Positions 4,608-28,817 of a stretch of DNA of 28,817 nt are shown one piece after another. Every line of letters starts with the position of its first letter. The first letter of the stretch is position 1. A program made the position numbers and the translations under genes. The notes beneath the pieces were generated by a model. The model was given only the letters and a program-made list of their open reading frames with translations, did no database searches and was not told the origin of the DNA. The DNA is from Paramicrosporidium saccamoebae KSL3 (taxonomy: Eukaryota; Fungi; Cryptomycota): the NCBI GenBank assembly GCA_002794465.1, contig MTSL01000201.1, positions 16,805 to 45,621 on the forward strand, given 5' to 3'.

Positions 4608-4660
4608 ACTGTTGGGTATAAACCAGTGGGAGTATAAACTATTGAGTATAGCCGTTGATT

Positions 4661-4918
4661 GAAATGTGCAGAATTCATCACTACTATTCAAACAAGGTTG
4701 AAATGGACGAAATTCATCATTATCATTCAAATCAAGATTCAAATGGACAAACTTCATCACTACCATTCAAACAAGGTTGTAATGGACAGGATTTACCACT
4801 ATCATTCAATCAAGGTTGCAATGGACAGAATCCATCACTACCATTCAAACAAGGTTGAAATGGACAAAATTCATCATTATCATTCAATCAAGGTTGAAAT
4901 GGACAGAATTTATCACTA
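4661..4918. repeat. 39-bp minisatellite, ~6.6 copies, alternating A/B units
   Basis: Consensus GAAATGGACAGAATTCATCACTACCATTCAAACAAGGTT. Units start at 4661, 4700 (40 nt, +1 insertion), 4740, 4779, 4818, 4857 and 4896 (partial). Confidence 0.97.
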
Positions 4919-4923
4919 GTACA

Positions 4924-9082: not shown

Positions 9083-9375
9083 ATGGTAAGTGTTGTTTCC
9101 TACCTCGTACCCTCGAGAACCCGGTCCATCCATTGTTCTCGCGCTCCCTATGCCATTCTTCTTTGCAGAGTACTAATAATATGTAGGATAAAGTCGAATA
9201 CGCCCGCGTCCTCAAGTGTCTGGGCCGTACCGGCTCCCGTGGTGGTGTCACCCAGGTTCGCGCCGAACTCTTGGATACCCAACGCTCCATCGTCCGCAAC
9301 GTCGTCGGCCCCGTCCGTGAGAACGACATTATTACCCTGCTCGAGTCTGAGCGTGAGGCCCGCCGTCTCCGTTAA
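9083..9375 (+). CDS. RPS28: 40S ribosomal protein eS28, ATG followed by a 101-nt intron (9086-9186), 63 aa
   Basis: Not in the ORF track. Exon 2 reads [27 protein letters not shown]...[26 protein letters not shown]; splice signals ATG|GTAAGT...TACTAAT...TAG; strong C-ending codon bias. Confidence 0.97.
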
Positions 9376-9586: not shown

Positions 9587-10115
9587 ATGGTAAGTGTCCT
9601 TCCACCCTTTCATTATCCATCCATCCATATTTATCCTCCTTGAACGAGTAACTAACCATGTTTAGACTGATATTGACGCCGCTGAGCTTAAGAAGAAGCG
9701 TACCTTCCGCAAGTTCTCCTTCCGTGGAGTTGAGCTCGACGAGCTCCTTGCCATGCCCACCGAGAAGTTTGTGGAGATGCTCCACGCTCGTGCCCGCCGT
9801 CGCTTCCAGCGCGGAATCAAGGGCCGTTCCAACTCCTTGATCAAGAAGCTGCGCAAGTCCAAGGAGGCTGCCGCCGCTGACGGTGAGGGTAAGCCCGAGG
9901 TCGTCAAGACCCATTTGCGCGACATGATCGTCGTCCCGGAAATGATTGGGTCAGTTATTGGTGTTTACAATGGAAAGGTTTTCAACCAGGTCGAGATTAA
10001 GCCCGAAATGGTTGGCTTCTACCTTGGCGAGTTCTCCATCACTTACAAGCCCACTAAGCACGGAAAGCCCGGTATTGGTGCTACCCATTCTTCTCGCTTC
10101 GTCCCTCTCAAGTAA
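9587..10115 (+). CDS. RPS15: 40S ribosomal protein uS19 (S15), ATG followed by a 76-nt intron (9590-9665), 150 aa
   Basis: [20 protein letters not shown]...[16 protein letters not shown]...[18 protein letters not shown]; splice signals ATG|GTAAGT...AACTAAC...TAG. Confidence 0.98.
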
Positions 10116-10655: not shown

Positions 10656-10864
10656 ATCGTGTCTAATACCTGCCGCTATAATAAAGATTCTATCATTTAT
10701 TATGTCTGGTTAATCCATGGCCATGGCGAGTGGTGTGCATAAGTTTTGTACTATGGTTCAGTCGGTCTAAATCGCATAAGGTGCGGTCACGATTTGGCCT
10801 GTACAGAAGTTGGTGTTTTGGGAGATTTGATGAAAAGCCAAAAACACGCAACGTATAGGTAAGC

Positions 10865-10928: not shown

Positions 10929-11090
10929 CTGACCATCACCATGCTGGCAAAGGGCTTACTGCGAGATTCAAGTAGAGATTCTGTGTAATAGCGAAACTAG
11001 GTTTATTACAGTCACCTTTATAGGTCGGCACTCTCCACACAATGGATTATGAGATTGCTATCGCGACTACCAAAAATAAACGGATACTGC

Positions 11091-11108
11091 TCAACAGACC
11101 CTTTATTC
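11091..11108. promoter_or_regulatory. Dispersed intergenic motif A (TCARCAGACCCTTTATT); other copies at 15019-15028, 16523-16539, 24007-24020, 28720-28738
   Basis: Five occurrences of CCCTTTATT/AATAAAGGG, all in intergenic spacers. Function unknown. Confidence 0.55.
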
Positions 11109-11217
11109 CCAGTCCGCATTTATGATATACAATCTCATACATATCAATCAGCAATCAACAAACTCTCTTCCATACCGATTAGAGAGTACGTAACTACACT
11201 TTCGCTACGCAGTACAG

Positions 11218-12243
11218 CTACTTGATATACTTTTCGATTCGACATAGAAAGAAGCCGCCGCCTGTCATTTTTGACGGCTTAATACGCATTGCTTTGAACT
11301 CATTGAAGGTTGTAATATACTCGACGGGGCCAATAGGATCCATGATCCTTGCTTCCAGTCTTTTGGATGACATAAACCTTTCAATAATGTCCTCGTTCTG
11401 TTCTCTGGTCAGACTGCATGTGCTATATACAAGTATCCCTCCAGGTCTCAATTGCCTGAATCCATTTTCCAACAGTGCAAGCTGTAATTGATACAATTCT
11501 CCAAGTCCAGTTGGAGAGTAATGCGATGGATCAAAGTCACGCCAGGCCGTCTCGATAAACTTGCGAACATGCTTGATGGAACCATCGTGGGTACATTGGG
11601 CATCGACGAGAACCTTATCATATAGATGGTCAGCAAATCGTCCTGGATATTTCCGATAGGGTGTTGAGCTGTAGGCAGGACGGGAGGTAGGGTAGAGATC
11701 TTGGAATTTCAACGAGGTGTCATCTGCTCTCGTCATAATATCGTGGACTCTCGTGCAAAAGATTCGTCCATCGGAGCAAAACAGCCTTGCTCTTGGCAAT
11801 TTATAGCGCCTTGCAAGCGTACATGCAGAGGCCAGCCTCTTTTTTGAAATGTCTACCCCAGTTACCGATCCCTTTATATCATTGTCGACTGGACAGACCG
11901 CTTTCGAAATCAGTGCCAGCTTGGTGCCGGGCGCACAACACAGATCCAAGACGTGTTCGCCGGGCTGCAGAAGCAAGTTTTCCACAGCAAGCCATGAGCT
12001 TGGGTCCATCGGCAGGATTTTCCCCGTCTTAAAAGCGCGTGTATGGGCCACAGAGGTGTCACTGGGGAGGATGAAAAAGTTGGTGGCCCAGTCAAGTCTT
12101 TCTGCTTCTGGGAATTCCTGTAATACTCCAGACACGTCATCATCGAGACAACAAAAGTATCTTTGTGGAATGGTGAAGTATATCTCTGGCGATATGTTGT
12201 GTTCTTTGAGGAAACATGTAAATTCTGCAGGCCAAGTGTCCAT
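11218..12243 (-). CDS. RsmB/NOP2/NSUN-family RNA m5C methyltransferase, ~341 aa
   Basis: VLDLCCAPGTK (motif I), DKVLVDAQCTHDG (motif IV) and GILVYSTCSL (motif VI); both catalytic Cys present. ATG at 12243 (MDTWPAEF) is preferred over the TTG at 12267. Confidence 0.9.
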   Translation of the reverse strand: MDTWPAEFTCFLKEHNISPEIYFTIPQRYFCCLDDDVSGVLQEFPEAERLDWATNFFILPSDTSVAHTRAFKTGKILPMDPSSWLAVENLLLQPGEHVLDLCCAPGTKLALISKAVCPVDNDIKGSVTGVDISKKRLASACTLARRYKLPRARLFCSDGRIFCTRVHDIMTRADDTSLKFQDLYPTSRPAYSSTPYRKYPGRFADHLYDKVLVDAQCTHDGSIKHVRKFIETAWRDFDPSHYSPTGLGELYQLQLALLENGFRQLRPGGILVYSTCSLTREQNEDIIERFMSSKRLEARIMDPIGPVEYITTFNEFKAMRIKPSKMTGGGFFLCRIEKYIK

Positions 12244-12282
12244 TGCGACTTGCCCCTGCACCAACAACCACTTTATTTGTAC

Positions 12283-14844
12283 CTAGGGCATATATACATA
12301 TACATCTTGACGAGCATCGTGCTCAATATATTGCTTTTCCATCAACTGCTCTAGCACCACTTCCAATTGCACCTGAGTGGGACGGAACGAGACTGGACCG
12401 GGTTTCATAGACTCTTCATCCACTAATTGGCTTAATCGGACGGGCGACAGCGACTGGTGTGCTTTAAGCAACTTTACAATGACGGCTTGGAGATGATACT
12501 TTTTGTTCTCAGAAAGATCCATAGAGAGGGATTCGGGGGCGTCAATCTCAATTATAGTGTCGACAGGCGATGTGCTTGGCAGCACGGCTCCGGTGCCGAT
12601 GGAGGATCCCAAGGTGTAGTGACAGAGATGAAGACGCGATTTAGAACACTTCCAGTCCATATTGTACTCAATCACAGCATTCGGACACGGCTCTTGACCA
12701 TCATTCATCTCCCATTTAAGTAATCCTGCAGTGATTATTGGCTAAGTGTGAGAGAGGACATTGGGCTATACCTTTACGACACACGAAAAATCACCCCATG
12801 ACAATCCCAACTTTTGCATCAGTTCAGAAGCGGGATATTGATCTCGCCTCTTGAAACATTGCAAGAGAGATGTTTGTGGGATGGTGGCGACAATCTCACA
12901 CAGCTTTCCCCTTCCGTTAGGATGAGCTAGGACCACCCGTGAAAGATGGTTAAGCCAATACAGCTGACGGTTTGGCCAGTTTTTCCTGTAGAATAGTGTA
13001 TACAGCTTTATCAAGCTCTCCATCTCTGGAGAAACTTTGGCTGCTGGATCAGATGGATCCATGGGATGATCAAGGGGCCACACTATATAGGTCGGAACTT
13101 GAACACTGATATCAACTAGACATTAATCAAGATATGGCCGTCTTACATGGAATAGGTGCCGCTCTCCCAGCCACATACTTGCTAAAATGTTTACGGAGCT
13201 GACTGGATACATGCATATCCGAGAACATTTTTCTCATCTTGATCTGTGATTCAAAGCCACATATAGCGCCGAGTCGGTCAATAAGTGTCGCTTCAATGTC
13301 GCCATGATGGGAAAGCCGGTAAAGTAGTCGCTCCGCAAGATGTACGATATAGGCGGCCATGAATTTTTCCTTTTCGTCCAAGTATTCTACCAAGACAATC
13401 ACATCGTCGATGCGAGCAGCCAATGCATCGCTCTTTTCAAACTCACTGTAAGCATCCTTTTCGTGAGCCACCTCGTCCTGCATCAGCATATCAAGGTAGT
13501 CGGCAATCAGGCTTCCTGCATCTCGTGTGGTGCATGGTGGCTGTATCTTCATAAAACGTCGAAAGGCGTCGGCGATTCTCTCCATGAAACGCCCGTCGGC
13601 GCTAAAGTGACTTACCACTTGCATTCTTGTGCTTTGCACCAGACAGGCGAGGGCTCCAACATACTCAGCAGCTACCAGCCGAGGATCGCTTTGATCCGAA
13701 ATCTTGTCTACGGCACGCTTTTCCTGCTGAAAGACGTAATTTTCAAAACAACTTGCAAGCGGCTCGATTCCATCTGGAATACGCTCCAGCAATCGATAAA
13801 CAATTTCTAACTCGACCCGCATATTCTTCTCAAGGAGCTTGTCGAAATCTTTCTGAAGACGATCAGTGTGCAGAGTGACCAGTTGCGATTCCACTGCAGA
13901 AATAATTTTTAGGGAGGAGCCAATTGGGAATAGCGATTTGGCATTTTGCACTTCTTCGCGGAGGCGTCTTTCTGCATAACGAACATAGCCAGTAATATCT
14001 TCACCAGCAATCTTTTCTGCAGACTCTACGCTGTAAAAATCTTTGGTGGCGGCTAGGAATGGCGCTTCCAATTCAAGCTCGTATAATGTCGGGGCGTCAG
14101 CATTTGGACGGTCATCCAGCTCTTTGAAGGGAACGGGGACTGGACCGCAGAACTCGTGCTGATCACAATCGTTGAACGACTTGATGGCACCTTCAAGACC
14201 TTTTATACTAATTTCCATGTTTCCTTTTACGCGAAGTGTTTGGAATGCGGCCAGAATCTCTTGTACCAAGACATTTCCCAACTTTTCTTTGGAAAAATAT
14301 AGCACCGCCTTTTTCCAAATATGGAAACCGAGAGCGCCTACAGGCTTCAGACGTACTTCCATGCGCTCCCCATTGATCATAACTATGGCGGTTTTACTAG
14401 GAAGATGCTCATCCTTCAATTTGTCAATGACTTTGTTGACGTACATGCAGAGAGAGTCGATTTGCTTCACTGCCTTACTATAGACCTGCCAGCAATTTGA
14501 ATAGCTATCCAGCAATGTAATTCCACCTCTCTGGGCATCCGTTATCATGTGCTATATGATAAGAATAAACGTTCTCGTACATCACGCAGTCGTATAGCCT
14601 CCTGGATGAACATTTTCCCAATCTGATGATAAACTTCGAGCAAGTGGTCCCTCGGTGCAGCAACGCACAAGTGGTAAATGGTGCTAAACAATCAGTCAGC
14701 CTGGTAACGCTAGCTGTACTAGTAAAGTTTTGAAGCGCTCACCGGTGTCGACTTGTCCGTCACACTAAAGAGCGACTGCAACGGACCTCTACAATCTGCC
14801 TCCCAGCAGGCCTCAAAATCTACTGACCTCGGCACCAACGACAT
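12283..14844 (-). CDS. CUL2: Cullin, CUL2-type, 5 exons, ~811 aa
   Basis: Introns 14684-14719, 14552-14580, 13116-13146 and 12742-12771 join four partial ORFs. N-terminus MSLVPRSVDFEACW...IYHLCVAAP..WQVYSKA resembles human CUL2 (MSLKPRVVDFDETW...IYALCVAYP..WEEYSKG). C-terminus LQAVIVKLLKAH keeps the neddylation Lys, followed by EKQYIE. Confidence 0.85.
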
Positions 14845-14995
14845 GGCACCTTTGTTATCGCGAGAGTATGTCTACGGACCAGGGCCGTTAAACTAGCAGT
14901 AAACAGTCGTGAACGAACAACCACGAACAAGCGATCGTGAATGCGTTTCCGTTTTGCTCATTAAATAGTAGGGGCTTGGCCCGTATCATCTTTCC

Positions 14996-15008
14996 CACTA
15001 CGCGACAC
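14996..15008. promoter_or_regulatory. Dispersed intergenic motif B (CACTACGCGACAC); other copies at 24279-24291 and 19303-19313 (reverse)
   Basis: Two identical 13-mers and one 11-mer match, all intergenic. Confidence 0.45.
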
Positions 15009-15078
15009 GCAGATCACTAATAAAGGGTATATCGGCGGATCGAAAATTCTCAGATATTACTACAAATCTCATACATTT

Positions 15079-15441
15079 CTACTTATTATCTAAGAGGGCC
15101 TTGGCCTCGTTAACCTTTGTCGCCAAGTAGGGCGATCCTCCACGGTCTGGATGATTGGCAATCATAATTCGACGATGTGCATCCTTAATCTGCTCCGGCC
15201 GGGCAAATTCCCGCACGCCAAGTATCAAGGCCGCCTCACGCTTGGTCATTTTGTTCTCAAAGCCGCCGCGGTAATAGTATATAAAAGGAGAGGCGCCAGT
15301 GAGGCGGGCAGTGCGCTGCATGGCGTGCCAGGTGCGGTAGAACCATCGGGCGGTGAAGAGGGCCCCCAGAGTTCCAGCGCCCGTTAGGACAGCGGCATAC
15401 TATCAACATTATGAATCAATACCGGCTTGTACGAGTCCCAT
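15079..15441 (-). CDS. PAM18: Mitochondrial import motor J-protein Pam18/Tim14, 2 exons, ~109 aa
   Basis: MGL, then intron 15400-15432, then YAAVLTGAGTLGALF (TM)...YYRGGFENKMTKREAALILG...NHPDRGGSPYLATKVNEAK. Confidence 0.95.
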
Positions 15442-15605
15442 TTGTCTGGATGGCTGTAACGTATTTACATAGTGAGACCGCAGCGAGCCTGTCGCTGCAT
15501 TAAGAAAAACTGCCCGAGACAGCATGAATTTTTGCCGTAAACGATGATTGGCTAACGAGGGCGGCGCTTTCTTTTATTTACACTGACTTGCAATTGGCCT
15601 GGAGG

Positions 15606-16244
15606 ATGCCGTCTGTTGAAGACACTTTGCTCATTGAGGTATTCCAAAAGTACTGTAACTTTGGCTCGCGTTCCAGCTTGACGAATGAGGCATCTCCCGG
15701 GCGCAAGTCCCTCATGATGGACGGCAGTAAATTCGCCAAGCTGATTCGTGAAGCTGGTCTGATTGATGACAGTCTAGTGACGTTGACCGAGGTTGACATT
15801 ACGTTTAGCCGGGTGAAGGACAAGGCTGAGCGTCGCATTTCTTTTCCACAATTCCGCACGGCTCTGAAGCAATTGGCTGACAAAAAATATTTGGTCGGCA
15901 CTGATAACGAAGTGTTGAGCTCCAAGGAGGCAGAACAGGCTGTGGTGGAGGTTGTTAGGAAATTAGGAGGACCACAACTCTCCCCTGGTACTACTATGCC
16001 CGAGACCTCTGACATGATCGAACGTCTCATGGAGGGTCCATCTACCTATATCAGCAAAACTCCTCGCGATGATTCGCGCACTTGGAAAAATGATTTAAGG
16101 CGTACGTCCAATACGTCGTCACGTCGATCGTCGGGTATTGATGCATCGCCCGCTTCATCTCGCAAATCATCCATGAATCCGGCCACCATGTCTCCTAATC
16201 AACTACCGCCATCACAACTCAACGATTCACCGCGCCGACCGTGA
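15606..16244 (+). CDS. TPPP/p25alpha-domain protein with a degenerate C-terminus, ~212 aa
   Basis: VFQKYCNFG...MDGSKFAKLIREAGLID..VTLTEVDITFSRVK...RRISFPQFRTALKQLA matches the p25alpha N-terminal part; Ser/Pro-rich tail. Confidence 0.85.
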   Translation: MPSVEDTLLIEVFQKYCNFGSRSSLTNEASPGRKSLMMDGSKFAKLIREAGLIDDSLVTLTEVDITFSRVKDKAERRISFPQFRTALKQLADKKYLVGTDNEVLSSKEAEQAVVEVVRKLGGPQLSPGTTMPETSDMIERLMEGPSTYISKTPRDDSRTWKNDLRRTSNTSSRRSSGIDASPASSRKSSMNPATMSPNQLPPSQLNDSPRRP

Positions 16245-16771
16245 TATTTGGCGTCTTCTGAATAAATGTGTCGGGATCGTTTGTAGCCGTGGAATAGGTG
16301 TTACAGGATGATACGACAATGTGAAGGGCGGATCGAGTGTCACCTTTTCCTTAGTAAATTGTCTAGTTTAAAGATGTAATTATTGGCTAGTGAGTAGTGA
16401 GCAAGTATATCTCTAAAGGCGCCCTTATAGGCTGTCGATCATAAGCGAATGTCTTTAACAGCAATGTTTAGATCTGCCAAAATCCATCTCATCCAGCGCA
16501 TGTTAATGCATGATTTATGAACGAATAAAGGGCTGTTGAATTCGTAATAAACGAGTTCTTTTCCCGGCCTTACAAAGTTTGTGGCAATTTATATATTACA
16601 CGACAGTTGCACAACAGTCACGTAAAAGGGACAATTTTCAAACATTACATTTCATAATTTGTTGGAATCTTCTCTTGATCCCAGTTGATCAAAAGGCTGT
16701 ATTGAACGCAGATTTGTTCACCGCAGAATACAGGGCCAAATTTGCAGACTGTCCAGGGTTGGCGGCTGATT

Positions 16772-17568
16772 ATGGAAACCTTTGCTAAGAAGCTCGCCTC
16801 GTCCGGTAATAGGCCCGCTTTGTCTCATTTTTAGATGGATCTATTCGCGAGAAAGCTTTCAAGACGCTAAGGCGCTGGCTAGAGGAGCGCTGCACCTCCC
16901 TTTCTGACAAGGACTACCTTCGTCTTTGGAAGGCCCTATTTTACAGCATGTGGATGGCCGACAAGCCCTCCTACCAACAGAACCTTGCCAAGAGACTCGG
17001 CGACATTTGGCTTGACATACACAAGGTGTCGTCAGAAGCAGGGCTCTTGTATGTGCGCACTTTCTGGGAGACGATGACAAGAGAGTGGCCGGGAATCGAC
17101 CGTCATCGGTTAGACAAGTATTATTTTATGGTAAGACGGTTCCTGTTGGCAGGCTTCGAGTGTATGAAGCACGAAGACTGGGACTTGGAGTGTATTCGCG
17201 CTTATAATAAGGTGTTGAGTGAGCTGCCACTGAACCCAACCCGCGGAGATGTACCTGATGCCTTGAGAATATACTTTTTGGAGAATTTTTCCAAAGTCTT
17301 TATGCATATGGAAGCGTCAGACTTGTCCGCTGAAGTGTCCCAGGAACTATTACGGCCGTATGTAGAGCTGGCAGCACATTCTGTGACAAAGCCGGTCCTG
17401 TCTATGGCAGAGACGCTATTTAAGAGTTTGCTGGAGGATAATGTATGCGACAGTCTCAATGTCCAGTCGGTCGGCAAGCTGGCGCTGTCTTTGGGCGAAG
17501 TGGAAGACTGCACAACCCTGAACCGAAAGGTCCTGTACGCAGCCAGCCAGTTATTACTCAAAGCATAG
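16772..17568 (+). CDS. RRP1: Pre-rRNA processing protein Rrp1/Nop52, 2 exons, ~255 aa
   Basis: METFAKKLASS, intron 16806-16834, DGSIREKAF...LWKALFYSMWMADKP...REWPGIDRHRLDKYYFMVRR. Confidence 0.93.
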
Positions 17569-17749
17569 TCTAATAGATGTTTACTTTTGCATTATTCAGT
17601 GTGCCTGAGATCTTAAACCAAAGAGTCGTGCATGATGTAACTAATCAGTTATTATTTAATAGTGATATCCCCGTATTGGTGTATTCGCTAAGCGCTGGTA
17701 TATTAACTGGACACTGATGTATTTAGTATATTCTAATCACACCGCCTCA

Positions 17750-19235
17750 CTAGATACGGCTACTTTCAATATTTTCGTCACCTCGTCCGCTAAACACTGG
17801 TGCATTCAGTATTCGCATCACATCGCCCACTAAATAAAGACTTCCGACGACCAGTATTTGTGCGCTTTGAATCGTCCCACAGAATGCGGTAGTGGTGATT
17901 GGGGTGGCGGTCTGGCCTGTCAGTCTCTTCCAATAGTCTACCATTTGCTCATGCAACAACATGTCATTTTGCTGCTCGATTGTATCCATTGGGGAGGTAG
18001 GCTTCACAAAGTAGACTTCATCAAATAGATCACGAACGAGGAGAATAGGCTCAAGAAGTTTGTCAAAGGGCCGATCATGAGACACGTGGAATGCAAGAAT
18101 AGATTTCCGTAGGCGGCTTCGATGTGAGCGGAACCATTTTAGCGAATACTTGATGCTTTCAACGGTATGCGCTCCGTCCAGGTACCACGAGCAGTTACCA
18201 GTGTGGTAGACTTGATGTCTACCAGGCCAAAACGTATTACGCAACGCAGCAGCAATTACGTCCTCTTGTGTGTTGTGCTGGGTACCATTGCCTTCCCACC
18301 ATCTACGGACTATTCGGACTGCCAGTGCAGCATTGATATACTGATGGCTGCCATCTATTCCTATCGACGTCATAAGTAAATAAAAACGCCTCTTACCGAG
18401 ATTTATGTTGAGCGAATTGGGCAATTCCTGGCTGAGCGATTCCACAAATTCCAACTTGGCACCCACTGAGCCTGCCGTTTTAGCAATCACCTCGACCGCT
18501 TCAACTGGTTGTGGGACGCTAATCAAGGGAACATTTTTTTTGGCAATCCCAGCTTTATGAAAGGCGATATCCCCCATGGTTGGGCCCAGAGATTTGACGT
18601 GTTCCATTGCAATAGAGGCAATGGCTGTTACTTGGGGATCCTCAATTACATTGGTGGCATCATAAAGCCCGCCCATACCAACCTCCAGAATTGCAACATC
18701 AAGGACACCCTTCCTGTAAGCACGGATCATTTGATCAAAGGCCATCAGAGTCATGAATCGAAAAAACCCTGGGATCGGGCCGTTCCATTTCTGAAGTCTC
18801 TCAAATGTGTCAATGACCGCTTCACTGAACGAGGTCAGGCTCATGGGACGTCCAGACCACCTGATCCTCTCTCGCGGATGCACCAAATGCGGAGAAGTGT
18901 ACAGTACAGTATTTAGCCCCTGATGTCTCAATATTGACTCTACAAACGCAGCTGTGGATCCTTTACCTTTAGAGCCCGTTATATGAATTATCTTGAGACT
19001 GTTCAAATCACTAGCCTGGATAATAAGACGATGGCTGATGAGATACCTGATGGCCGAGTGTGGAGAGAAGTTGACGCATTTCAGAAAGACTGCTAGAGTG
19101 CTTTAACTTTTGCATCTCTAGGGATGCCAATATCGACGCATTACTCGGGAGTCGGTTCCATAAGATGTCTTCAGCCAACTACACTTTAGTCACGCCAATA
19201 AATTTCCATACTGACACCACATCTGTGCCCAACAT
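17750..19235 (-). CDS. MET7: Folylpolyglutamate synthase (FolC family), 4 exons, ~461 aa
   Basis: Introns 19179-19211, 19016-19046 and in-frame 18361-18396. Motifs: IIHITGSKGKGST, YTSPHLVHPRERI, LEVGMGGLYDATN, WPGRHQ, WYLDGAHTVES, LVVGSLYLVG. RLPSNA and FFRFMTLMAF favour FPGS over DHFS. Confidence 0.9.
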
Positions 19236-19500
19236 GGAAGATACTCCCAGACGGCCCACGCGTAGCTTCAGCAGCTTGCTGTGTGCGAATCGGGCATGGG
19301 TTTGTCGCGTAGTAGATTGGCTGCCGCAGGCTTTCTTGAGTGGGAGGGAACTCATTTATTACCAATATGTAGGTTTAAAAATGTAGTGTTAATTTGTGTC
19401 CCGATCAATCCGCCATTTTACAGAGCGTCGCTGACTCTCTCTGCCATAATTGGCTTATTCTCGAAAAAGAACCAACCAATCACTTTACAGGTTGACGCTC

Positions 19501-20828
19501 ATGTCCGAGGAGAGCGCCCAAGAGTGGGCTGCGAGGCTACCTACTCAGTCTCGTCGCAGTACCCGTAATGCTGCACGACAAGAACACTCTTCTGAAGACT
19601 TGTCCCATGTGCGAGTTGCACACAGGAGCCTTGCTGAAATGGAGGCTGGACATTCAGAGGTGCTGGTGCTGGATGACCAGCTGGTTGAGGAGGGAGAGGA
19701 TGCACTGGTCTCCCTGGAGAGGAGAGACATGGAGGCTGCGGAAAAGAGAATCGCCGCCAAAAGGAAAATGCGACAGTCTAATCCTTACGATGACGAGATT
19801 GACCAGCCCGTAAGGATGGGCCAGGCCAGGTCTCTACTGCGTAAATACGACGAAGAAGATGACGAAAGTGAAAAGGTATGTGCTAGATTCAGGACAGCTA
19901 ATGATTTTAGGGCCTCACCATAGCAGAATTGACGATCGGGTCAAAGCGACAAGCCGCAATCGACAATCCAATCGACGAGTCCATGCCAGTGGAGCTCAAA
20001 AAGAGAAACGTCAGGAGAAAAGTCATTTCCTTCACCGATGAGCCCATTCCCTCATCGTTTTCAGCAAATCCCTTGGCTTTGATGGATAACAAGCCACTCG
20101 CTCTGGATGACGATGACTTGCAGCAATCATTGGCCAAAACTCGACGTTACAATATTAAAGAATTTATTCAACAGGAAGATTTGGCGACTGAGAAGGATCC
20201 TGTAACCATCGAGGGAGTCATCTTTAGTGAATCTACAGATTTCATCAACTCGGTCAAAGTGCAAAATTTGGTTCATTTCGAGCAAGACATGCACGTCGAG
20301 TCACCGCCAGAAATACTGGCTGTCCCAGATAAGCCAATAGATGCTCCCTTTGAGCAGGAGCCATTAGTCAGACGAGGCGTCTGTGCTGCTCTTCAATATC
20401 TTGCCAAGTTAGGGATCCGTCCGCAACTGAGCAATGAAGCAATTGCTCCTCAGCAACGCTCCCGTCTTGCCCGCTTTGCGGATATAAAGATTGAGCACCA
20501 CGACGAGGACGGAAACTTGCTAACTCCCAAAGAAGCCTATAAATTACTCTCGCACAAGTTTCACGGAAAGACACCCGGAAAGGGCAAGTTGGAGAAGATT
20601 CGACGCAAAAAGGAGCAATCAAAAACCATACAGTCCTTCAGCCTTGACGATACGCCACTGAGAACGGCGTCTGCATTGCGAGAGAGGCAGAGGACAACGG
20701 GCAGCACCCACATTGTTCTTTCCAAGGGCAGCCACGCTGTTCCGTCCGAGGAAGCGCCGGCAAAGCCAAAGGCCAAAGTGCCGGCCAAAACTGTAGAAAG
20801 AAAGCCACGTATTTTTGGAATGAAATAG
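19501..20828 (+). CDS. SNU66: U4/U6.U5 tri-snRNP protein Snu66/SART1, shortened, 2 exons, ~430 aa
   Basis: EDLSHVRVAH...VLVLDD, LLRKYDEE, intron 19876-19910, RGVCAALQYL, DIKIEHHDEDGNLLTPKEAYKLLSHKFHGKTPGKGK (SART1 C-terminal signature). The start codon is uncertain. Confidence 0.88.
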
Positions 20829-21283
20829 AGACTTTTTCATGTCATGTATAAAGCTTACATTACGTTGTTGCTAATAGCCCTAAATGACGAGAACAAGTCC
20901 GTCGCTATGAGCTAAGCGGACGCAAAAAGGTAAAGATTAGGATGATCGGCCACCCAGCTTACAATGCATGGCATTGTGAGATGGTAGATCTATGAATTTT
21001 AGCCAATAAATCTGTTAGACAGTAGCCAGTAGCCAGTTATGACTGCTAATATTAATAGCTATCCCACAATCCGTGAGGGCGTGGGTCTATAAAGACGCCT
21101 TTAATAAGTATGCACTCTCGCTCACCAACAGGGTCTCTATTGGCAATGCTGCATAGGCTAAATTGTTTATTCGGTTGTTAGGGGAATCAAAGTGTCCAAG
21201 CAGGCCAAAACTCCCTTATGGGCTTTGGAAATAGCGCTACAGTACAGGTGCAGACAGCTGGCGCCCCAAGCTCTACAGACTGG

Positions 21284-21354
21284 CCAATTATATCGATTTG
21301 CGCCATTGGTCTAATTCCTGACCAATGAAAGCCTCTAGTCCCCCCTCAGCCAAT
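21284..21354. promoter_or_regulatory. Cluster of CCAAT boxes upstream of the secreted-protein gene
   Basis: CCAAT at 21284, 21322 and 21350 (AGCCAATCG), ATTGG at 21305; further copies at 21003 and 21139. Confidence 0.5.
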
Positions 21355-21416
21355 CGCATTGCTGAAATTCGAATTTTTCTTGACAAGCCACCCTATACCG
21401 CCCCGGTTCGTTTTCT

Positions 21417-22076
21417 ATGCAGCTCACTCTGCCTGCCGTCGCCCTTTTTGTCGCCACCGTCGCCGCCTCCAGCTCCAAGTTCGTACCGGTCGACGCCAAC
21501 GAATTTGAGATACTCGCAGCGAGCTTAAATCAAGACCATGGTCATTCCGTGTTCCCCACGCTGGACCGAAAGGACTTTGACTTGCACCCTGACTATGACC
21601 TCTTCCTAGACGTCCAGAAGCGCTTCCCCGACTCGAACCTTCTCCACTTTGGTAACCCTAACGAGACTCTCCGTGACACGCTCCTTAAGGGTGCCTCCAT
21701 GGAGGTGGCCAAGTCCATTGAGCAGAGATATAAAGCTGACCCGGCTTTCATTGCAAAGGAAATGCTAAATTTTCCCAGTGGAACTACAAATGTGATTCCA
21801 AAGATCCGTAATAATGTCAGAAAGGCTGTTTCTGCTGATTTCCTCGGACGTCTTGGACGTCGGTTCCCCCATCTCGCTCGCTACACGCATAAACAGCTTC
21901 AAGTGGAGTTGTTGAAGGGTATTAAAAATCAAAAAGTCATCGACTACATCAACGGCATGTCTAACAACGACGATACTTGGATTGCAAACACGCTGCTATC
22001 ATCTCCAACCACTCATCCAAGACCCATAGAGAATCTTCGCAGGGTTGTTGTGGCTGAAGTTGCTAAAAGTCCGTAG
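21417..22076 (+). CDS. Orphan secreted protein with two ~77-aa internal repeats, 219 aa
   Basis: Signal peptide MQLTLPAVALFVATVAAS; intronless; strong C-ending codon bias in the first half; no family recognised. Confidence 0.8.
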   Translation: MQLTLPAVALFVATVAASSSKFVPVDANEFEILAASLNQDHGHSVFPTLDRKDFDLHPDYDLFLDVQKRFPDSNLLHFGNPNETLRDTLLKGASMEVAKSIEQRYKADPAFIAKEMLNFPSGTTNVIPKIRNNVRKAVSADFLGRLGRRFPHLARYTHKQLQVELLKGIKNQKVIDYINGMSNNDDTWIANTLLSSPTTHPRPIENLRRVVVAEVAKSP

Positions 22077-22195
22077 AAGCAGATGCGCTTACTAACTAAA
22101 TAAATACTAGATGATAGGAAGCCATTGATCCGGTTGAATACATTTGTGATTGTTAGAAACAGGCCGCCGGGGCCTACTGTATTTGGATAGACTCA

Positions 22196-23968
22196 ATGAA
22201 GTCAGAGGGGGAAGCAACGACCAGCGTGTCTCATACGAGATGGGAGGGCTCTTTACCTAGTCATGTAGAAAAGTTACAAAACTTGCTGGCCATGTACTTT
22301 CCGCAATTCGGAGAGGTGCAGTATCAACGAATTGAAGTGGAAGGTTCTGGTCATTTTGCGTCCCGAGCCGGAGCCATGTCACTGGTGCAGTATCGGTGCA
22401 GAGCTTTGCTGTTCGGGATGCCGATAGAGACGCGCACTGTGTATGCAGAATGGGATACTGCAAAAGAGGCCGCTGCACAATCGGCGTTTACAATACTCGC
22501 CGAGTTCCTGAGACTGGTGCACGGGAGGACCGATGATCCAATGTTTGGCAAAATGTTTGCTCCGCTGGTAAAGGAGTTAGAAGCTTATCGCCAGCAGCCC
22601 GTCCCTATGCTGTTGGAAGAGCAGGCGGCCATAGATGCGGGACATCAGCCGGTTATTCGACTTACAGACTATGATAAAGGTACAGAGGCGAAGGAAAGGG
22701 TTCTCGGCCCGCTCTTATCAGCTGTGTATGCCAAGGTTACTAATCCAAACGATAAGGATAAGGTACCAGCCTCTCCAGAGGCTGACCAGCCGAAAGCTAC
22801 GACGGCTATGGATGTGGAGCCAGCTTCTGTTAGCCGGCCTCCGGATCAAAACCCCATGTCTGTACTTTACACGCACTGTCAAAAGAGCAATGGAAAACTT
22901 GCAAAGCCCGAATTTACAGATTTTCGAAAAGATGTATATTTTGGCGCTATTGGGACCTATGCGGGCGAGAAAGTTGCTGTGGCAGCCGTGTACAGGAAAA
23001 AACAAGAAGCCTTCCAGGAGGCAGCAAGGCTGCTCTGTGAACGGATCCTTGGAAACGTCATTCAATTTAAACCGATCCCTGCTGATTGCACAGGCCCGAC
23101 CTTGGTGGATGCACAAAACTTTATTGTTGCCAACAGCATTGATGTTGTTACAAACACAATCAAGGTTCAAAGTGCTGCATCGACTAGTGTTAAAGAACTT
23201 GAAGAGTGGCAAAGAGAACTGCCCTCTGGTCCAGCATCTGTAGAGTACCCACCAGGTGGTCAAAAGTTTGTTTCCCTTGTGAATGAATTTTGTCAGATAA
23301 TGGGGATGCCGGGACCGAACTTTACGACTCGGAATGTGAATGCTTCACTCTCACTCTCGTATTGTTGCATTGTTGACAATTTTTACGACAAAAAATACGT
23401 AAGCTATGCATTTCAAAAGAAACAGGAGGCCAAGGAGGACTGTGCTGCTCGCATATTTCAAGATTTAAAGGATCGCGGGCTGGTCAATGAGCGTGGGAAG
23501 GCCATCAAACAACCCAGAAGTGCCACCAGAGCGCCCATTCCGATGCCCTTTCCTCCTCGGCTCCCCTCGCAACGCTCCTCCAGGCCTACAGACTTGCCTT
23601 TCTCAGTCTTTCCGCCGCCTATTCAACCGGGAATGCCCGATCCCATTGCAATGATGCACTATCACCATCACCGTCAAATGATGGCAGCCATGGGAGCGTC
23701 GTTGGACCAGGATGGAGCACGCTCGCCACAAGGAACACCTCCTTGGATGCCTGTAAACCCGATAATGTCAAGATTGCCCCCTATACCTCGTCGAATCGCT
23801 TCGCCGCGGTCTCGCTCCCAAATACCGCCACTCCATACTCTTCACCCTCAATTTGGGAGATCTGATGGGAGGAACACAAGGAAGCGCTCCACCCATGAAC
23901 GGAGCTCACGTAGCCGTTCACGTGATTCTCGAGTGAACCGTAAAGGAAGGGATCGTTCAGATTCGTAG
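22196..23968 (+). CDS. dsRNA-binding-domain protein (3 dsRBD-like units, Pro-rich region, RS-rich tail), 590 aa
   Basis: Units ending TAKEAAAQSAFTIL, YRKKQEAFQEAARLL and FQKKQEAKEDCAARIF. The second and third open with dsRBD-like helix-1 starts NPMSVLYTHCQK and KFVSLVNEFCQ. No RNase III or deaminase domain seen. Confidence 0.78.
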   Translation: MKSEGEATTSVSHTRWEGSLPSHVEKLQNLLAMYFPQFGEVQYQRIEVEGSGHFASRAGAMSLVQYRCRALLFGMPIETRTVYAEWDTAKEAAAQSAFTILAEFLRLVHGRTDDPMFGKMFAPLVKELEAYRQQPVPMLLEEQAAIDAGHQPVIRLTDYDKGTEAKERVLGPLLSAVYAKVTNPNDKDKVPASPEADQPKATTAMDVEPASVSRPPDQNPMSVLYTHCQKSNGKLAKPEFTDFRKDVYFGAIGTYAGEKVAVAAVYRKKQEAFQEAARLLCERILGNVIQFKPIPADCTGPTLVDAQNFIVANSIDVVTNTIKVQSAASTSVKELEEWQRELPSGPASVEYPPGGQKFVSLVNEFCQIMGMPGPNFTTRNVNASLSLSYCCIVDNFYDKKYVSYAFQKKQEAKEDCAARIFQDLKDRGLVNERGKAIKQPRSATRAPIPMPFPPRLPSQRSSRPTDLPFSVFPPPIQPGMPDPIAMMHYHHHRQMMAAMGASLDQDGARSPQGTPPWMPVNPIMSRLPPIPRRIASPRSRSQIPPLHTLHPQFGRSDGRNTRKRSTHERSSRSRSRDSRVNRKGRDRSDS

Positions 23969-24365
23969 AGACTGGCACCGTATACTGTGTGTGTGGTTTA
24001 CAGTAAAGACCCTTTATTGGCCATCTATTGAGATTTATTAGAAGCTACAATCCATATGTGACGTAGAAGACTGATTAGTATGTCTTTTGGAAATAGTTCT
24101 CTAGTTTGGAGAAGGGATAATCAGAACAATCGATGAAGGATGATGAGATCTATATCTTACCATTTGAGGATTATTACTATGCAACTCGGGAGACTATAAA
24201 ATGACTTACGATTTGATAATAAAAGAGTTCCCTTGCCTCCCAAATAAATAGTAGTGACAAAGTCCGTAGTATTATCCTCACTACGCGACACATAGATATA
24301 ATTCATATATAGAATCATAGATAGCATCTCGGCTCCTCGACCACTCTCTTGGAATATACAATGTT

Positions 24366-24821
24366 TTATGCCTCTATCAATTTTATGGCATCACGGCACT
24401 TTCGAATCAACTCGTCAAATTCTTCAGTTTTCCCTTTGTCTCCACTCAATTTGCGTTGCAACCCTTTCAATCTCGTCACTGCTATTTTCATTGCCGCCTT
24501 TTGAGCACCTCTAATAGTGCCTGCCACTCTTACAACCCTCCAAAGCCCCATCAGCGTGACTGCGGCCCAGACCATTGCTACTCCCTCTCTCGCACACCGC
24601 ACCACTGCCATACCTGTTGTTGCATTCACATACTTGACACTTAAGGACTGAGCAGTCATAGCCGAGCCAAAGTGCCCAAAATTAGTGCCCAAACAGGAAC
24701 GCAGCTGGGTAGCAAGGCTGGTGGTGGAAAGAGTGGTGGTAGGTTGGTAATCTACGAGGCCATGCTTGGGGTCCACTGAGAGCCCCTCAATCAGAAGATA
24801 TCTGTTCTTGAAACGAACCAT
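24366..24821 (-). CDS. POP5: RNase P/MRP subunit Pop5, 151 aa
   Basis: Canonical start MVRFKNRYLL, then NFGHFG, VKYVNATTGMAVVRCARE and VRVAGTIRGAQK. Confidence 0.9.
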   Translation of the reverse strand: MVRFKNRYLLIEGLSVDPKHGLVDYQPTTTLSTTSLATQLRSCLGTNFGHFGSAMTAQSLSVKYVNATTGMAVVRCAREGVAMVWAAVTLMGLWRVVRVAGTIRGAQKAAMKIAVTRLKGLQRKLSGDKGKTEEFDELIRKCRDAIKLIEA

Positions 24822-24991
24822 TTGTAAAGTTTGTAGTCTGTGGGTATACTTTCGAGTGCGAGGCTTATAGTCGGTGGCTAGGCGTTTGAGTGCAAAGTTT
24901 GTAGTCCGTAGATGCACGTCTTTGTAATACCAAGACCCTGGGTCGCAGTCTGTAGCAATAATATACTTTACCATAATCGCCGTGGTCCATC

Positions 24992-25091
24992 ATTCCTGTT
25001 CAATAATAGGTACGCTTTGCCATAAACACCGCGTCCTATTATTCCTGCTCAATCTCCAACTGATCACCTCGTACTTTTATTCCTGCTCAAT
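24992..25091. repeat. Three spaced copies of ATTCCTGYTCAAT
   Basis: Copies at 24992, 25041 and 25079; the last two share 15 bp (TTATTCCTGCTCAAT). Confidence 0.7.
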
Positions 25092-25116
25092 TAATTCCCA
25101 ATAAACAGGAGTTAGT

Positions 25117-26970
25117 CTAGTTTAAGGCCTGTTGAACAAAGAGACCGTGTTTTTCAACAATATTGGTCCATTCACGTTCTCCACGTACTATGGATGCAAT
25201 AGTCGTTGCAACGTCGTCCAACGACAAACGCACCTGTGCTGTTGAATCACGTTCACGCAGCGTGACAGTCCGGTCTTTCACAGTTTGGAAGTCGACAGTG
25301 ACGGCAAATGGAACACCCACTTCATCGCTACGGGCGTAACGTCTTCCAATGGTGGCAGATGAGTCATCCACCTGACAGTTCAGATCCAATTTGCGGAACA
25401 ATGTAACCAGTTCCCGACAGAATGGTGTAAAGTCGTCGTGGTTGCTGAGAGGCGCAACCAAGACCTTTAGAGGTGCAATAGCGGCGGGGAGGGAGAGGAC
25501 GCAACGTTGCTCATCGCCCTCGCGAGTCCAGAACACGTGTTCCAGAAGAGAGTACATAATCCTGCCAATTCCAAACGACGGCTCAATGACATTGGGCGTA
25601 TATTCGTTCACATGGACAGTCTCCACGCTCTCTACAATCTTGGCCATGGCTGGCGTCAATTTTACTAAAGATTCGATTCCATCAACGCTCACCGCAGTAT
25701 TTCCCTCCGAGTCAGTCTTGGCCATCAAGTCTTCGGCTTCGCAGAGAGTAAGACGCTCCAACATGTCAACAATCGCTTTGGCATCCTTTTTGTATGCCAT
25801 TCCAATGTCCTTTTTGCTCACTTCAAGGCGCTTCACCTGCATTATCTTTGGCTCGGGAAGACGTTCACGGACGACCAGCTTTTCCTTTGTCCACTGAGTG
25901 TGCATGGTCAGATCATAGGCAGAACGATCGGCACATCCTACACACTCGACCCAACCGTATGAGGACTGAATCTCGGCATCCCAGCAATCAGAGGCATAAT
26001 GGGACATTTCGTTGGGAAGATGTTGGCGGAAGCGGAGTCGGTCACCATTGACACCAATTTTCCACAGATACATGGCTGTTCGGCCTAAAAAGTAGCCCAG
26101 TGTCTCGTTATCGACAACCTTCTTCTCCACCGCCTCTCCAATAGTCATTTCCAAAGTCTTGCTGATTCCCTCCATCTGTAGGCTTGAAGGCAAGAAGGGG
26201 AGAACAAGATGGGCGACTTCAGAGAAGCGAGGGTGATTCTTCTTTTCCGGATGAACATAATGCTCAATTTCGGCCATGGTAAACTCGCGGACTCTCAGCA
26301 ATCCGGCACGGGGAGAAATTTCATTGCGAAACGATTTTCCAATCTGCGCAGATGCGAATGGCATACGCTCGTAATTGCACTCCAGGAGGCGCTTAAAGTT
26401 GGTAAACTGTCCCTGCGCCGTCTCGGGGCGAAGATAGCCGCGGATTTGTCCCTTGGGACCGATACTGGCACCAAACATCAGATTGAACGGAATCACGGGT
26501 GTCAGTTCATTTCCAAGGTCGGAGCGAACCTGGAAGCGCTCCATAAGGGCCTGAAGCTGCACTTCCTTGTAATCATCAAGTTGAGAAAGGATGCGCTCAA
26601 TTTCCTTCTTTTCCGCCTCAGGAGCCTCCTTCAGGCGCTTCTCAAGACGGTCCTCTAGGATGTGGTCAGCGCGATAAAAGTCGCCCGTCTTGGAGTCGTT
26701 CACCATAAAGTCAGTAAAGCGGTCCACATGTCCAGACGCCTTTAATACATCATGGGGTGTAAGAATGGTAGTGTCCAGTTCTAACATATTCTCCTCCAAC
26801 ACGAAATGGCTTCTCCATAACGCTAGCATGTTGGCCTGCAGAGCACAGCCCGGAGGTCCATAGTCATAAAGTCCTGCAACACCACCGTATATGCTAAAGG
26901 CGGGTGCGTAAAAAAAGCGCTTCTTTAGCAACTCTTCCAGACGGGCACGTGAAAATGGAGCACTACTCAT
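25117..26970 (-). CDS. GRS1: Glycyl-tRNA synthetase (eukaryotic alpha2 type), cytosolic form 617 aa; frame stays open ~90 codons further upstream
   Basis: RFFYAPAFSIYGGVAGLYDYGPPG, LRPETAQG, FRNEISPRAGLLRVREF, EPSFGIGRI, IGRRYARSDEVG. Confidence 0.97.
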   Translation of the reverse strand: MSSAPFSRARLEELLKKRFFYAPAFSIYGGVAGLYDYGPPGCALQANMLALWRSHFVLEENMLELDTTILTPHDVLKASGHVDRFTDFMVNDSKTGDFYRADHILEDRLEKRLKEAPEAEKKEIERILSQLDDYKEVQLQALMERFQVRSDLGNELTPVIPFNLMFGASIGPKGQIRGYLRPETAQGQFTNFKRLLECNYERMPFASAQIGKSFRNEISPRAGLLRVREFTMAEIEHYVHPEKKNHPRFSEVAHLVLPFLPSSLQMEGISKTLEMTIGEAVEKKVVDNETLGYFLGRTAMYLWKIGVNGDRLRFRQHLPNEMSHYASDCWDAEIQSSYGWVECVGCADRSAYDLTMHTQWTKEKLVVRERLPEPKIMQVKRLEVSKKDIGMAYKKDAKAIVDMLERLTLCEAEDLMAKTDSEGNTAVSVDGIESLVKLTPAMAKIVESVETVHVNEYTPNVIEPSFGIGRIMYSLLEHVFWTREGDEQRCVLSLPAAIAPLKVLVAPLSNHDDFTPFCRELVTLFRKLDLNCQVDDSSATIGRRYARSDEVGVPFAVTVDFQTVKDRTVTLRERDSTAQVRLSLDDVATTIASIVRGEREWTNIVEKHGLFVQQALN

Positions 26971-27111
26971 CCTTCCCAACGATAAACGACATCCCCGGCT
27001 TTGCTCTTTAGTATACTCTCCTCTCAGGTCTTGGGCATTTGTTGTGCTAAATAGAGTTCTTCCCAATGTATTAAATGAACTGAGTGAACCATTATGGGCC
27101 CTTGTAGAAAA

Positions 27112-28542
27112 ATGCCGCACTCCACTCCACGCCTTGTGTCGACCCGTGGTTCGTCCCAATGTGAGGACTTTACTTCCCTGAAGGTGCAGGGATTGTGTCC
27201 TGAAAACGGAGGGTTGTATGTACCCTCGCATTTCCCGCACGTAGGCCTGCCGGTCTTGGAATCGTGGCGGGGTTACAGCTTCCCTGTCCTGGCCCAGGCT
27301 GTCCTCTCCCTCTACCTCCCTGAGACAACCATCTCAACTGACGACTTGAAGCGATTGCTTGAAAAGTCGTTTAGTACGTTTGAAGACGAACGTGTCACTC
27401 CAATCGTGACAATTGATGCAAATTTCCATCTGTTAGAGTTGTATCGCGGTCCGACGCTCTCTTTTAAGGACATTGCTCTACAATTCCTTGGCAATTTCTT
27501 GGAGTATCTCGTCCAAAAGCAGACTGTGGATAAGCCTGTGGTTGTTTTGGGAGCCACAAGCGGGGACACTGGAAGCGCAGCAATTGCGGGCTTAGAAGGC
27601 AAAACGGGCATCAAGGTGGTTATATTGTATCCTGAAGGCAGAGTGTCTCTTGTGCAAGAACTGCAAATGATTACTGGAAATTCTGCCAATGTAACATGCC
27701 TAGCCTGTCCTGGCTCGTTTGATGAGTGTCAAACCTTGGTCAAGGAGGCGTTTGCCGATAAAGATGTGCAGGCTCGATTTCAGTTGCTTGGGATTAATTC
27801 GATTAACATTGTGAGGATTCTGGTGCAGACCGTCTACTACTTTTATTCATATCTACGTTTGGCAAAAAAGATTGGCGATTCTATCGATTATTCAGTGCCC
27901 ACTGGTAACTTTGGCGATATTCTGGCGGGCTACTATGCCAAACGTATGGGTCTACCGTTGGGTCAGCTGGTGATTGCTGCAAACTGTAATGACATCCTGC
28001 CCCGTTTCCTGAACACTGGGACGTACTCTCTAAACAATGTGGTGCCCACCATCAGTCCATCTATGGATATTCAAATCTCGAGCAACTTTGAGCGATACTT
28101 GTACGAATTGTCGGGAAGAAATTCGGAACAAGTAGCCACCTGGATGCATCAATTGAATACAGAGGGCAGTTTTTCCGTTTCCTCCACAGAACTCGCGCAA
28201 GCGAGACGCGACTTTTCTGGATACGTGGCCACCAGAGATGGCTGTCTTGAAACTATTGCGCAAATTGCACGACGCTCAGAGGGAACGATGGTGCTTGATC
28301 CACATTCGGCGATTGGTGTGAGTGCAGCCATTCAGGCCAGAAATCATGATATCCCTATAGTTTCACTGGCAACCGCCCATCCGGCAAAATTCCCTGATGC
28401 TGTTTCCAAGGCACTTGATACTGTGGGAATTAAGAATTCCCCATGGCTGTCACATCCGTCTATAACTGCGCTCGTTGGTAGAGAAAAGAATGTTGGCAAG
28501 TTGAGTATGTTTACGTTGGAAGCTCTTTTGAAATATTTGTAA
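27112..28542 (+). CDS. THR4: Threonine synthase (PLP fold type II), ~476 aa
   Basis: VSTRG, GGLYVP, GPTLSFKDIALQ (PLP Lys), GATSGDTGSAA, VPTGNFGDI, SPSMDIQISSNFER, LATAHPAKF. Start is ATG 27112 or 27094. Confidence 0.95.
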   Translation: MPHSTPRLVSTRGSSQCEDFTSLKVQGLCPENGGLYVPSHFPHVGLPVLESWRGYSFPVLAQAVLSLYLPETTISTDDLKRLLEKSFSTFEDERVTPIVTIDANFHLLELYRGPTLSFKDIALQFLGNFLEYLVQKQTVDKPVVVLGATSGDTGSAAIAGLEGKTGIKVVILYPEGRVSLVQELQMITGNSANVTCLACPGSFDECQTLVKEAFADKDVQARFQLLGINSINIVRILVQTVYYFYSYLRLAKKIGDSIDYSVPTGNFGDILAGYYAKRMGLPLGQLVIAANCNDILPRFLNTGTYSLNNVVPTISPSMDIQISSNFERYLYELSGRNSEQVATWMHQLNTEGSFSVSSTELAQARRDFSGYVATRDGCLETIAQIARRSEGTMVLDPHSAIGVSAAIQARNHDIPIVSLATAHPAKFPDAVSKALDTVGIKNSPWLSHPSITALVGREKNVGKLSMFTLEALLKYL

Positions 28543-28817
28543 TAAATGTGACGTGATGTAAAGGTGCCATGTACTTTTGCGAGGTTTGAGTAAAGATCCG
28601 ACAATCAATATCCGCTTGTTATTGGTGAGCCCGACTCGGATAGCGATTCCACAGTTTAGTGTGTCGAGGGTGGAAGTTTATAAAGGAGCCATCTACTTTT
28701 GGAAAAATAGGTTCGCCCTTCAGCAGACCCTTTATTGGTATTCCCGGTCCATAGTTATACCGTCCCACAGACACTATAAAGTAATCTTTTCCGCTCATTA
28801 ATAGGGCCTTTACTACA

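Follow-up and report, generated by a model that had tools for sequence, protein, structure and literature searches.

The locus and the copies of the element

The subject of this analysis is a short word that recurs between the genes of Paramicrosporidium saccamoebae (Rozellomycota; genome paper, PMC5701793), with the invariant core CCCTTTATT, usually present as ACCCTTTATT and in its full form as TCARCAGACCCTTTATT. The window (the whole stretch of DNA analysed) takes in the 3'-terminal 28.8 kb of contig MTSL01000201.1 (assembly GCA_002794465.1) and ends at the contig end. All motif counts cover 35.6 kb of this one contig, that is, the window and 6.8 kb upstream of it, from contig position 10007 onward. 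The region is compact and intron-poor, its introns are short, and the Microsporidia are a related (sister) lineage. Spacers make up 16–17% of the sequence, a typical spacer being about 100–150 nucleotides (nt) long.

The gene map was drawn from the called genes, from Pfam and from our own reading of the sequence. It begins with Upf2 (−), Sec62 (+), several hypothetical genes and TAF8 (+), and continues with RPS28 (+, unannotated), RPS15 (+) and the acidic ribosomal protein P2 (10326–10655, +). Next come an NSUN-type methyltransferase (−), a cullin (−) and Pam18/Tim14 (−), followed by p25-alpha (+), Nop52 (+), FPGS (−) and SART1 (+); the order ends with a dsRBD protein (+), Pop5 (−), GlyRS (−) and threonine synthase (+).

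The first copy (s1), a full form TCAACAGACCCTTTATT at 11091–11107 (+), is located in the spacer on which P2 (+) and the NSUN methyltransferase (−) converge; its minus-strand reading is AATAAAGGGTCTGTTGA, 110 nt past the NSUN stop. The second (s2) consists of the core only, as ACCCTTTATT at 15019–15028 (−), in the tandem spacer of Pam18/Tim14 and cullin, 50 nt past the Pam18/Tim14 stop and 175 nt ahead of the cullin ATG (14844). A copy with a 1-nt deletion relative to s1 (s5, TCAACAG-CCCTTTATTC, 16523–16539, −) is found in the tandem p25-alpha/Nop52 spacer, 279 nt past the p25-alpha stop and 232 nt ahead of the Nop52 ATG (16772). Between the dsRBD protein (+) and Pop5 (−), in a convergent spacer, lies s3 (AGACCCTTTATTGG, 24007–24020, +), directly after an AGTAAA (+33 from the dsRBD stop) and 347 nt from the Pop5 stop. 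Finally s4, again a full form (TCAGCAGACCCTTTATTGG, 28720–28738, +), is situated 178 nt past the threonine synthase stop, the contig ending 81 nt beyond it. A variant, GGACCCTTTATATAC, may be counted as the sixth copy; it lies outside the window on its upstream side, at about position 5126 of locus L002 (−), in a divergent spacer and 19 nt ahead of the probable ATG of a ubiquitin-like (Ubl) gene. Common to the copies are the core and up to seven upstream bases (TCARCAG) only. At 562, 234, 527, 397 and at least 275 nt, the spacers with the motif are long.

An earlier note on this DNA had placed five copies at these positions and none in coding sequence. All five were located there, on both strands, and the exact word CCCTTTATT occurs five times in spacers and not once in coding sequence. 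The note had further claimed that the recurrence exceeds chance. Since the word had been chosen after being seen, the test was corrected for all possible k-mers. The top-shared 9-mer is the motif, present in five spacers, and no 9-mer was shared by more than four in any of 500 dinucleotide shuffles of the spacers; the top-shared 10-mer is present in four spacers, against a maximum of three in 500 dinucleotide-preserving shuffles. ACCCTTTATT was matched four times against 0.02 expected, which upholds the claim. The boundary of the set is abrupt: with a position weight matrix (PWM) built from the five sites these score at least 21 and the next best site 14. There are nine one-mismatch copies, four of them in spacers. 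GGG follows AATAAA at five of 44 hexamers, against about 0.7 expected, and the density of the motif is about one copy per 6–7 kb, or per 4–5 genes. A possible companion word, ATGAGAT, present in four motif-bearing spacers, was matched in 91 of the 500 shuffles and is not significant across all 7-mers.

Outside the core there is little to compare. A MAFFT alignment of 100 nt around the six copies keeps the core alone, and when gapped and ungapped pairwise local alignments were set against shuffles, none of 30 comparisons of flank similarity survived correction. Apart from some short, unrelated matches, BLAST among all spacers returned nothing but the motif. No terminal inverted repeats or target-site duplications are present at s2–s5, and no duplicated flanks were seen. 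Because the flanks cannot be aligned we regard the motif as a short site and not a fragment of a transposon. It is a short cis-acting DNA site, strict, intergenic, present on both strands and situated beyond the 3' signals of the flanking genes.

Local inverted repeats accompany some of the copies. That at s1 is the centre of a 92-nt nested palindrome (11048–11139), whose outer arms are TATGAGATTG and CAATCTCATA and whose inner arms, AATAAACGG (11075–11083) and CCCTTTATT, place AATAAA on both strands; its RNA folds give z-scores of −3.5 and −3.3, one for each strand. At s3 the motif pairs with the preceding CAGTAAAG, the AGTAAA region, as an 8-bp hairpin, and for s4 the inverted partner is ATAAAGG (7 nt), 42 nt away at 28680–28686. 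No inverted partner was found at s2 and s5, and among the copies an RNA fold is significant at s1 only.

Polyadenylation signals and gene 3' ends

The hexamer AATAAA occurs in sense at −15 to +56 nt from the stop codon in 12 of 25 genes, and a one-base variant is present in the same interval in most of the others. Five of the 12 stop-proximal hexamers have the form AATAAAG, and AATAAAG is read on one strand of all five copies of the motif. That the stop-proximal hexamers are working poly(A) signals is supported by P2, whose signal and surrounding 3' untranslated region (UTR; CTGCCGCTATAATAAAGATTC) are conserved in a relative with a cullin merely 53% identical. The same 3' UTR contains a word, CTGCCGCTATAATAAAGAT (window 10670–10688), which is conserved in a distant relative (L004 5262–5283), and a near-identical copy of it (18/19) occurs at window 3075–3093, 20–40 nt ahead of the Upf2 start codon.

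The neighbours of the motif are mostly provided with signals of their own: P2 at +24, p25-alpha at +16, threonine synthase at −2 and the dsRBD gene with AGTAAA at +33, while Pam18 and Pop5 have hexamer variants overlapping the stop codon. Since most neighbours possess their own hexamer, the motif lies beyond the ordinary 3' ends. Its AATAAA strand stands at +110 from the stop of NSUN, +347 from that of Pop5 and +279 from that of p25-alpha; at s2 it is antisense to both neighbours, and at s4 it faces beyond the contig end. An AAUAAA-type hexamer is thus present in each copy but not at the typical sense distance from a stop, the copies being 110–436 nt from the ordinary 3' ends of their neighbours or antisense to them. 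The earlier note had judged the motif to be no ordinary poly(A) signal. For most sites that judgement stands. The exception is NSUN, the sole neighbour without a nearer hexamer, where the first AATAAA to be met in sense past the stop is the motif itself. Its description of orientation, with a sense 3' end nearby only at 11091 and possibly 16523, is accurate with respect to the nearest gene end, except that the copy at 24007 is also in sense to Pop5, at 347 nt. As an argument orientation carries less than was implied, because a copy between convergent genes is in sense to one of them whichever way it points, and the copies in the two tandem spacers point one each way.

One might nevertheless suppose that the motif is read on RNA, where it would signal polyadenylation or termination, either as a back-up or in both directions. 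The AATAAAGGGTCTGYTGA strand would then act as a strong poly(A) signal, a hexamer with a G/U-rich tail, by which antisense transcripts or read-through would be caught; between convergent genes its partner would be a second hexamer on the opposite strand. AATAAA, often as AATAAAG, is clearly the hexamer of this genome; besides being the first such signal after NSUN, the motif is part of the first cluster past Pop5 (+326 and +347) and offers a distal site after p25-alpha. The s1 palindrome bears AATAAA on both strands, s3 abuts an AGTAAA of the opposite strand, and the context CCAATAAAG is common to the motif and the signal of the hypothetical gene hyp455. Set against this, poly(A) signals are usually degenerate outside the hexamer, and here the sequence is strict; the GGGTCTG extension is found in none of ten stop-proximal signals; s2 has no annotated transcript in sense; the orientations are as uninformative as described; and most of the neighbours are already served by a hexamer at the usual distance. 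We consider an RNA-level back-up signal unlikely.

A further structure was noticed near gene ends: a hairpin of about 45 nt, GTGTCGCGTAGTGRG-loop-CYCACTACTATTTA, seen in two copies at window 14962–15008 and 24245–24291, in minus-strand sense, about 70 nt past the stops of Pam18 and Pop5.

Long spacers, hidden genes and relatives

Because other long spacers of this region hide genes, the motif-bearing spacers were searched for them. Two genes are missed in the contig annotation. One encodes ribosomal protein S28e (RPS28; window 9083–9374, +), with its ATG at 9083, a short intron, an exon at 9186–9374 and AATAAA at 9431; it is situated inside an annotated spacer of 726 nt and matches Pfam S28e with E = 1.6e-27. 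The other is an RPABC4/Rpb12 frame (L002 5420–5602, +, corresponding to window −1378 to −1196; Pfam Zn_ribbon_RPAB4, E = 3.7e-15). The annotation also contains one false fusion of three genes, in which a single 1209-aa gene (window 11218–15525, −) combines the NSUN-type methyltransferase, the cullin (first exon ATG 14844) and Pam18/Tim14; these are called separately in relatives. In the spacer between the hypothetical genes hyp172 and hyp238 (window 4660–4920, minus strand) three tandem 79-nt units with ATGATGA boxes, and a weak match to SNORD33 at 4702–4767 (E = 0.8), probably represent a cluster of C/D small nucleolar RNAs (snoRNAs). A C/D-box snoRNA-like candidate with AUGAUGU ... CUGA and a terminal stem was found in the convergent Nop52/FPGS spacer (window 17632–17717, +). 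A tRNA-Ala called by ARAGORN within the RPS15 coding exon (window 9762–9837, −) is probably false, there being no Rfam tRNA match.

In the motif-bearing spacers themselves Rfam gave no hits at the gathering score, permissive scans remaining at chance level (E 1–10). A C/D-box pattern scan gave no candidate in them and a single one in another spacer, and Pfam recognised nothing in any of their open stretches of at least 30 codons. Among the positive options offered by the earlier note (a DNA–protein site, a terminator of antisense transcripts or a marker of small RNA genes) it is the last which loses ground through these negative searches. The small-RNA idea is only weakened, since in this divergent organism Rfam barely detects even the snoRNA-like cluster.

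Another proposal starts from the ACCCTTTATT direction, in which the motif could be taken for a promoter or start-site box resembling the CCC-like signals of microsporidia, A/T-rich and then ACCCT; it would drive unannotated small or non-coding transcripts together with a few annotated genes. In Microsporidia (T)ACCC(T) follows an A/T-rich stretch just upstream of the start sites of mRNAs and non-coding RNAs (PMC2803860, PMC5499648). ACCCT is present in four of the five P. saccamoebae copies and GCCCT in the fifth, and most have an A/T-rich run 5–25 nt upstream, which is not adjacent as in microsporidia. Ahead of the copies in the ACCCTTTATT direction there are 110, 175, 347, more than 81 and 279 nt of gene-free DNA. 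One copy, s2, points at cullin, the variant copy lies close ahead of the Ubl ATG, and ACCCT is found 23, 27 and 84 nt ahead of the starts of RPS15, hyp219 and Rpb12. The unusual length of the motif-bearing spacers, in a region where other long spacers harbour unannotated genes, would also suit such a box. It is opposed by the lack of any RNA family, C/D-box pattern or protein domain downstream of any copy, by the fact that transcripts from three of the copies would run antisense into neighbouring 3' ends, and by the frequency of ACCCT ahead of annotated genes, which is no greater than chance. The distances to ATG codons are, moreover, far above the microsporidian value of at most 15 nt: no exact copy occupies a position within about 15 nt upstream of a start, and the variant copy stands 19 nt from its own. 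A promoter box of this type seems to us an unlikely explanation.

When cullin and Pam18 served as protein queries, public run assemblies and metagenomes proved to contain many Paramicrosporidium-like organisms, and syntenic loci from at least eight relatives were compared (L004, L125–L131, L133, L134). CCCTTTATT was found in none of the spacers of these loci. In particular, the orthologous Pam18–cullin, p25-alpha–Nop52, dsRBD–Pop5 and P2–NSUN spacers are without it and are all shorter, and a search of the relatives for an equivalent extended AATAAA word, or for a species-specific motif of their own, yielded nothing convincing. The relatives are very divergent (cullin 37–53% identical, p25-alpha 50%) and their spacers unalignable; for this reason the absence of the motif says little about its function. 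One close relative, with 87–88% protein identity, is represented in JGI metagenome 3300042203 by fully coding contigs of 1.3–1.8 kb. Matches of the 17-mer in metagenomes (at least 120, single) were dismissed as chance noise; the few inspected are bacterial, and none among the matches listed resembles the window. In the literature neither this word nor any other regulatory motif was found described for Paramicrosporidium, and the genome paper (PMC5701793) makes no mention of motifs.

It could be argued from these comparisons that the copies are functionless remains of a short insertion, a dispersed repeat or foldback peculiar to this species and resembling a miniature inverted-repeat transposable element (MITE), of which the most conserved end alone is recognisable. 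There are five exact against nine one-mismatch copies where the ratio by chance is 1:27; the motif is absent from all sampled relatives, in which the orthologous spacers measure 40–125 against 234 nt, about 100–200 against 527 nt, 161 against 397 nt and 338 against 562 nt; and s1 lies within the 92-nt nested palindrome. Such an origin is improbable in our view. The similarity of the flanks fails the shuffling tests, target-site duplications and terminal inverted repeats are lacking at s2–s5, a neutral remnant would not be expected to hold a perfect 9-mer amid decayed surroundings, and the relatives are too distant for a missing motif to count for much. Chance recurrence, or a by-product of AATAAA-rich spacers, is very improbable indeed: AATAAA-type words are frequent in spacers and several unrelated 10-mers likewise occur four times in the 35.6 kb, but the observed sharing was reached in none of the 500 shuffles, GGG follows AATAAA more often than expected, and identity extends to 12–14 bases in three copies and to 16 of 17 in two.

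Some further sequences may be recorded. The 11-mer CAATCTCGTCA occurs four times (window 8182, 8693, 19791–19801 (−) and 24468), always in the coding sequence of unrelated genes. A PAC-like word, GATGAGATG, is present on the minus strand at window 16483–16500, about 280 nt upstream of the ribosome-biogenesis gene Nop52. The best matches of threonine synthase (window 27094–28542, +), besides one metagenomic relative at 88%, are Paenibacillus and diatom enzymes (about 49%), and other Paramicrosporidium-like relatives are not among its best 120 matches, which suggests horizontal acquisition or loss in the relatives. At the contig end of one relative (L004 9017–9046) there are 3.7 copies of an 8-nt unit, TATCGGAT, which may be a chromosome-end or satellite repeat.

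A putative DNA-bound factor and known systems

The explanation we favour, tentatively, is that the motif is the binding site of a sequence-specific DNA-binding factor which marks, insulates or organises the intergenic gaps. A protein-binding DNA site is favoured because the core is strict, its boundary abrupt and its copies spread over both strands and over mixed types of spacer, outside the 3' signals and at about one per 6–7 kb; a signal for RNA processing would be expected to be degenerate and bound to one orientation. Copies occur in tandem and convergent spacers, the variant occurs in a divergent one, and there is no rule of orientation relative to the genes. An identical 9-mer in all five copies, the fall of the PWM score from 21 or more directly to 14 and the absence of similarity in the flanks point to the footprint of a binding site and not to a repeat. 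We infer that a protein reads the motif on the DNA, with termination or insulation as the outcome.

The putative factor, once bound, would form a boundary or road-block, as do the general regulatory factors of yeast, and read-through from one packed gene into the next would be stopped. Transcripts crossing toward AATAAAG should in addition be cleaved and polyadenylated, because AATAAAG is the poly(A) consensus of the genome. At s1, s3 and s4 a second A-rich hexamer is present on the other strand within 4–45 nt; it would stop transcripts arriving from the opposite side, so these three sites appear suited to termination from both directions. In its fullest form the proposal is of a lineage-specific boundary element of about 17 bp, combining a road-block with a consensus poly(A) signal and numbering roughly a thousand copies in the 7.3 Mb genome. 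We put this forward as a speculation that is unlikely to hold.

Several points weigh against a DNA-bound factor. The protein is itself putative, and as far as sequence comparison goes the word appears to match no known factor consensus that could be tested. Two of the five copies are in convergent 3'–3' spacers, where yeast promoter-type factors are uncommon, and the place of s5, within what is presumed to be the Nop52 promoter, is no clean boundary. The motif occurs in no syntenic relative, though all are very divergent. The sample is of five to six copies from a single contig, and much of the case is built on the elimination of alternatives.

Among eukaryotes, the genomes of Microsporidia and of their rozellid relatives are some of the most compact; their transcripts overlap, and the signals that direct transcription in them are poorly understood. 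In an early-branching relative, a strict word that lies between genes and outside the normal 3' ends could show how compact genomes keep the boundaries between genes, and might serve as a practical landmark for re-annotation. Should the boundary element prove real, it would be a previously undescribed answer to transcriptional crowding in the lineage leading to the Microsporidia. With five to six copies from one contig the motif is so far a lead and not a result.

Compared with the canonical AAUAAA signal, and with the bidirectional terminators of convergent genes, the motif is alike in carrying a perfect AATAAAG, the genome's own consensus, and in having at s1 and s3 an A-rich hexamer on each strand. 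It differs in position, at 110–436 nt from stops or antisense where ordinary signals lie at −15 to +56, and in its strict extension of 4–11 nt, which is missing from ordinary signals.

Nearly every microsporidian gene has its CCC/GGG-like signal at most about 15 nt from the start codon or the start site (Peyretaillade et al. 2009, PMC2803860; Belkorchia et al. 2017, PMC5499648). The two are alike in that they come from related lineages and are strictly intergenic; the core ACCCT (GGG on the other strand) and a nearby A/T-rich or TATA-like stretch recur in most of the P. saccamoebae copies. Unlike the microsporidian signal, the exact copies are at least 175 nt from an annotated ATG or face 3' ends, and the P. 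saccamoebae word is longer, at 10–17 nt.

The CArG box of MADS-box proteins, CC(W)6GG, was also considered and set aside. The corresponding CCTTTATTGG is found at s3 and s4 only, s1, s2 and s5 ending in CC, AG and CG, and the conserved bases of the motif are upstream of the box and not within it.

The sites of the yeast general regulatory factors Reb1 (TTACCCG), Rap1, Abf1 and Tbf1 act as road-block terminators or insulators. Those of the Reb1 type have a density of the order of one per few genes, and the sites of promoter-type factors are uncommon between convergent genes. The P. saccamoebae word appears to fit the consensus of none of the four (for Reb1 by inspection, ACCCTTT against TTACCCG), two of its five copies lie between convergent genes, and its own binding protein is putative. 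In its presumed mode of action the element would nevertheless come closest to these sites. What it has in common with the yeast sites is a C-rich core, ACCC, and the habit of a short, sharply bounded word which occurs in either orientation, in gene-free gaps, about once per few genes.

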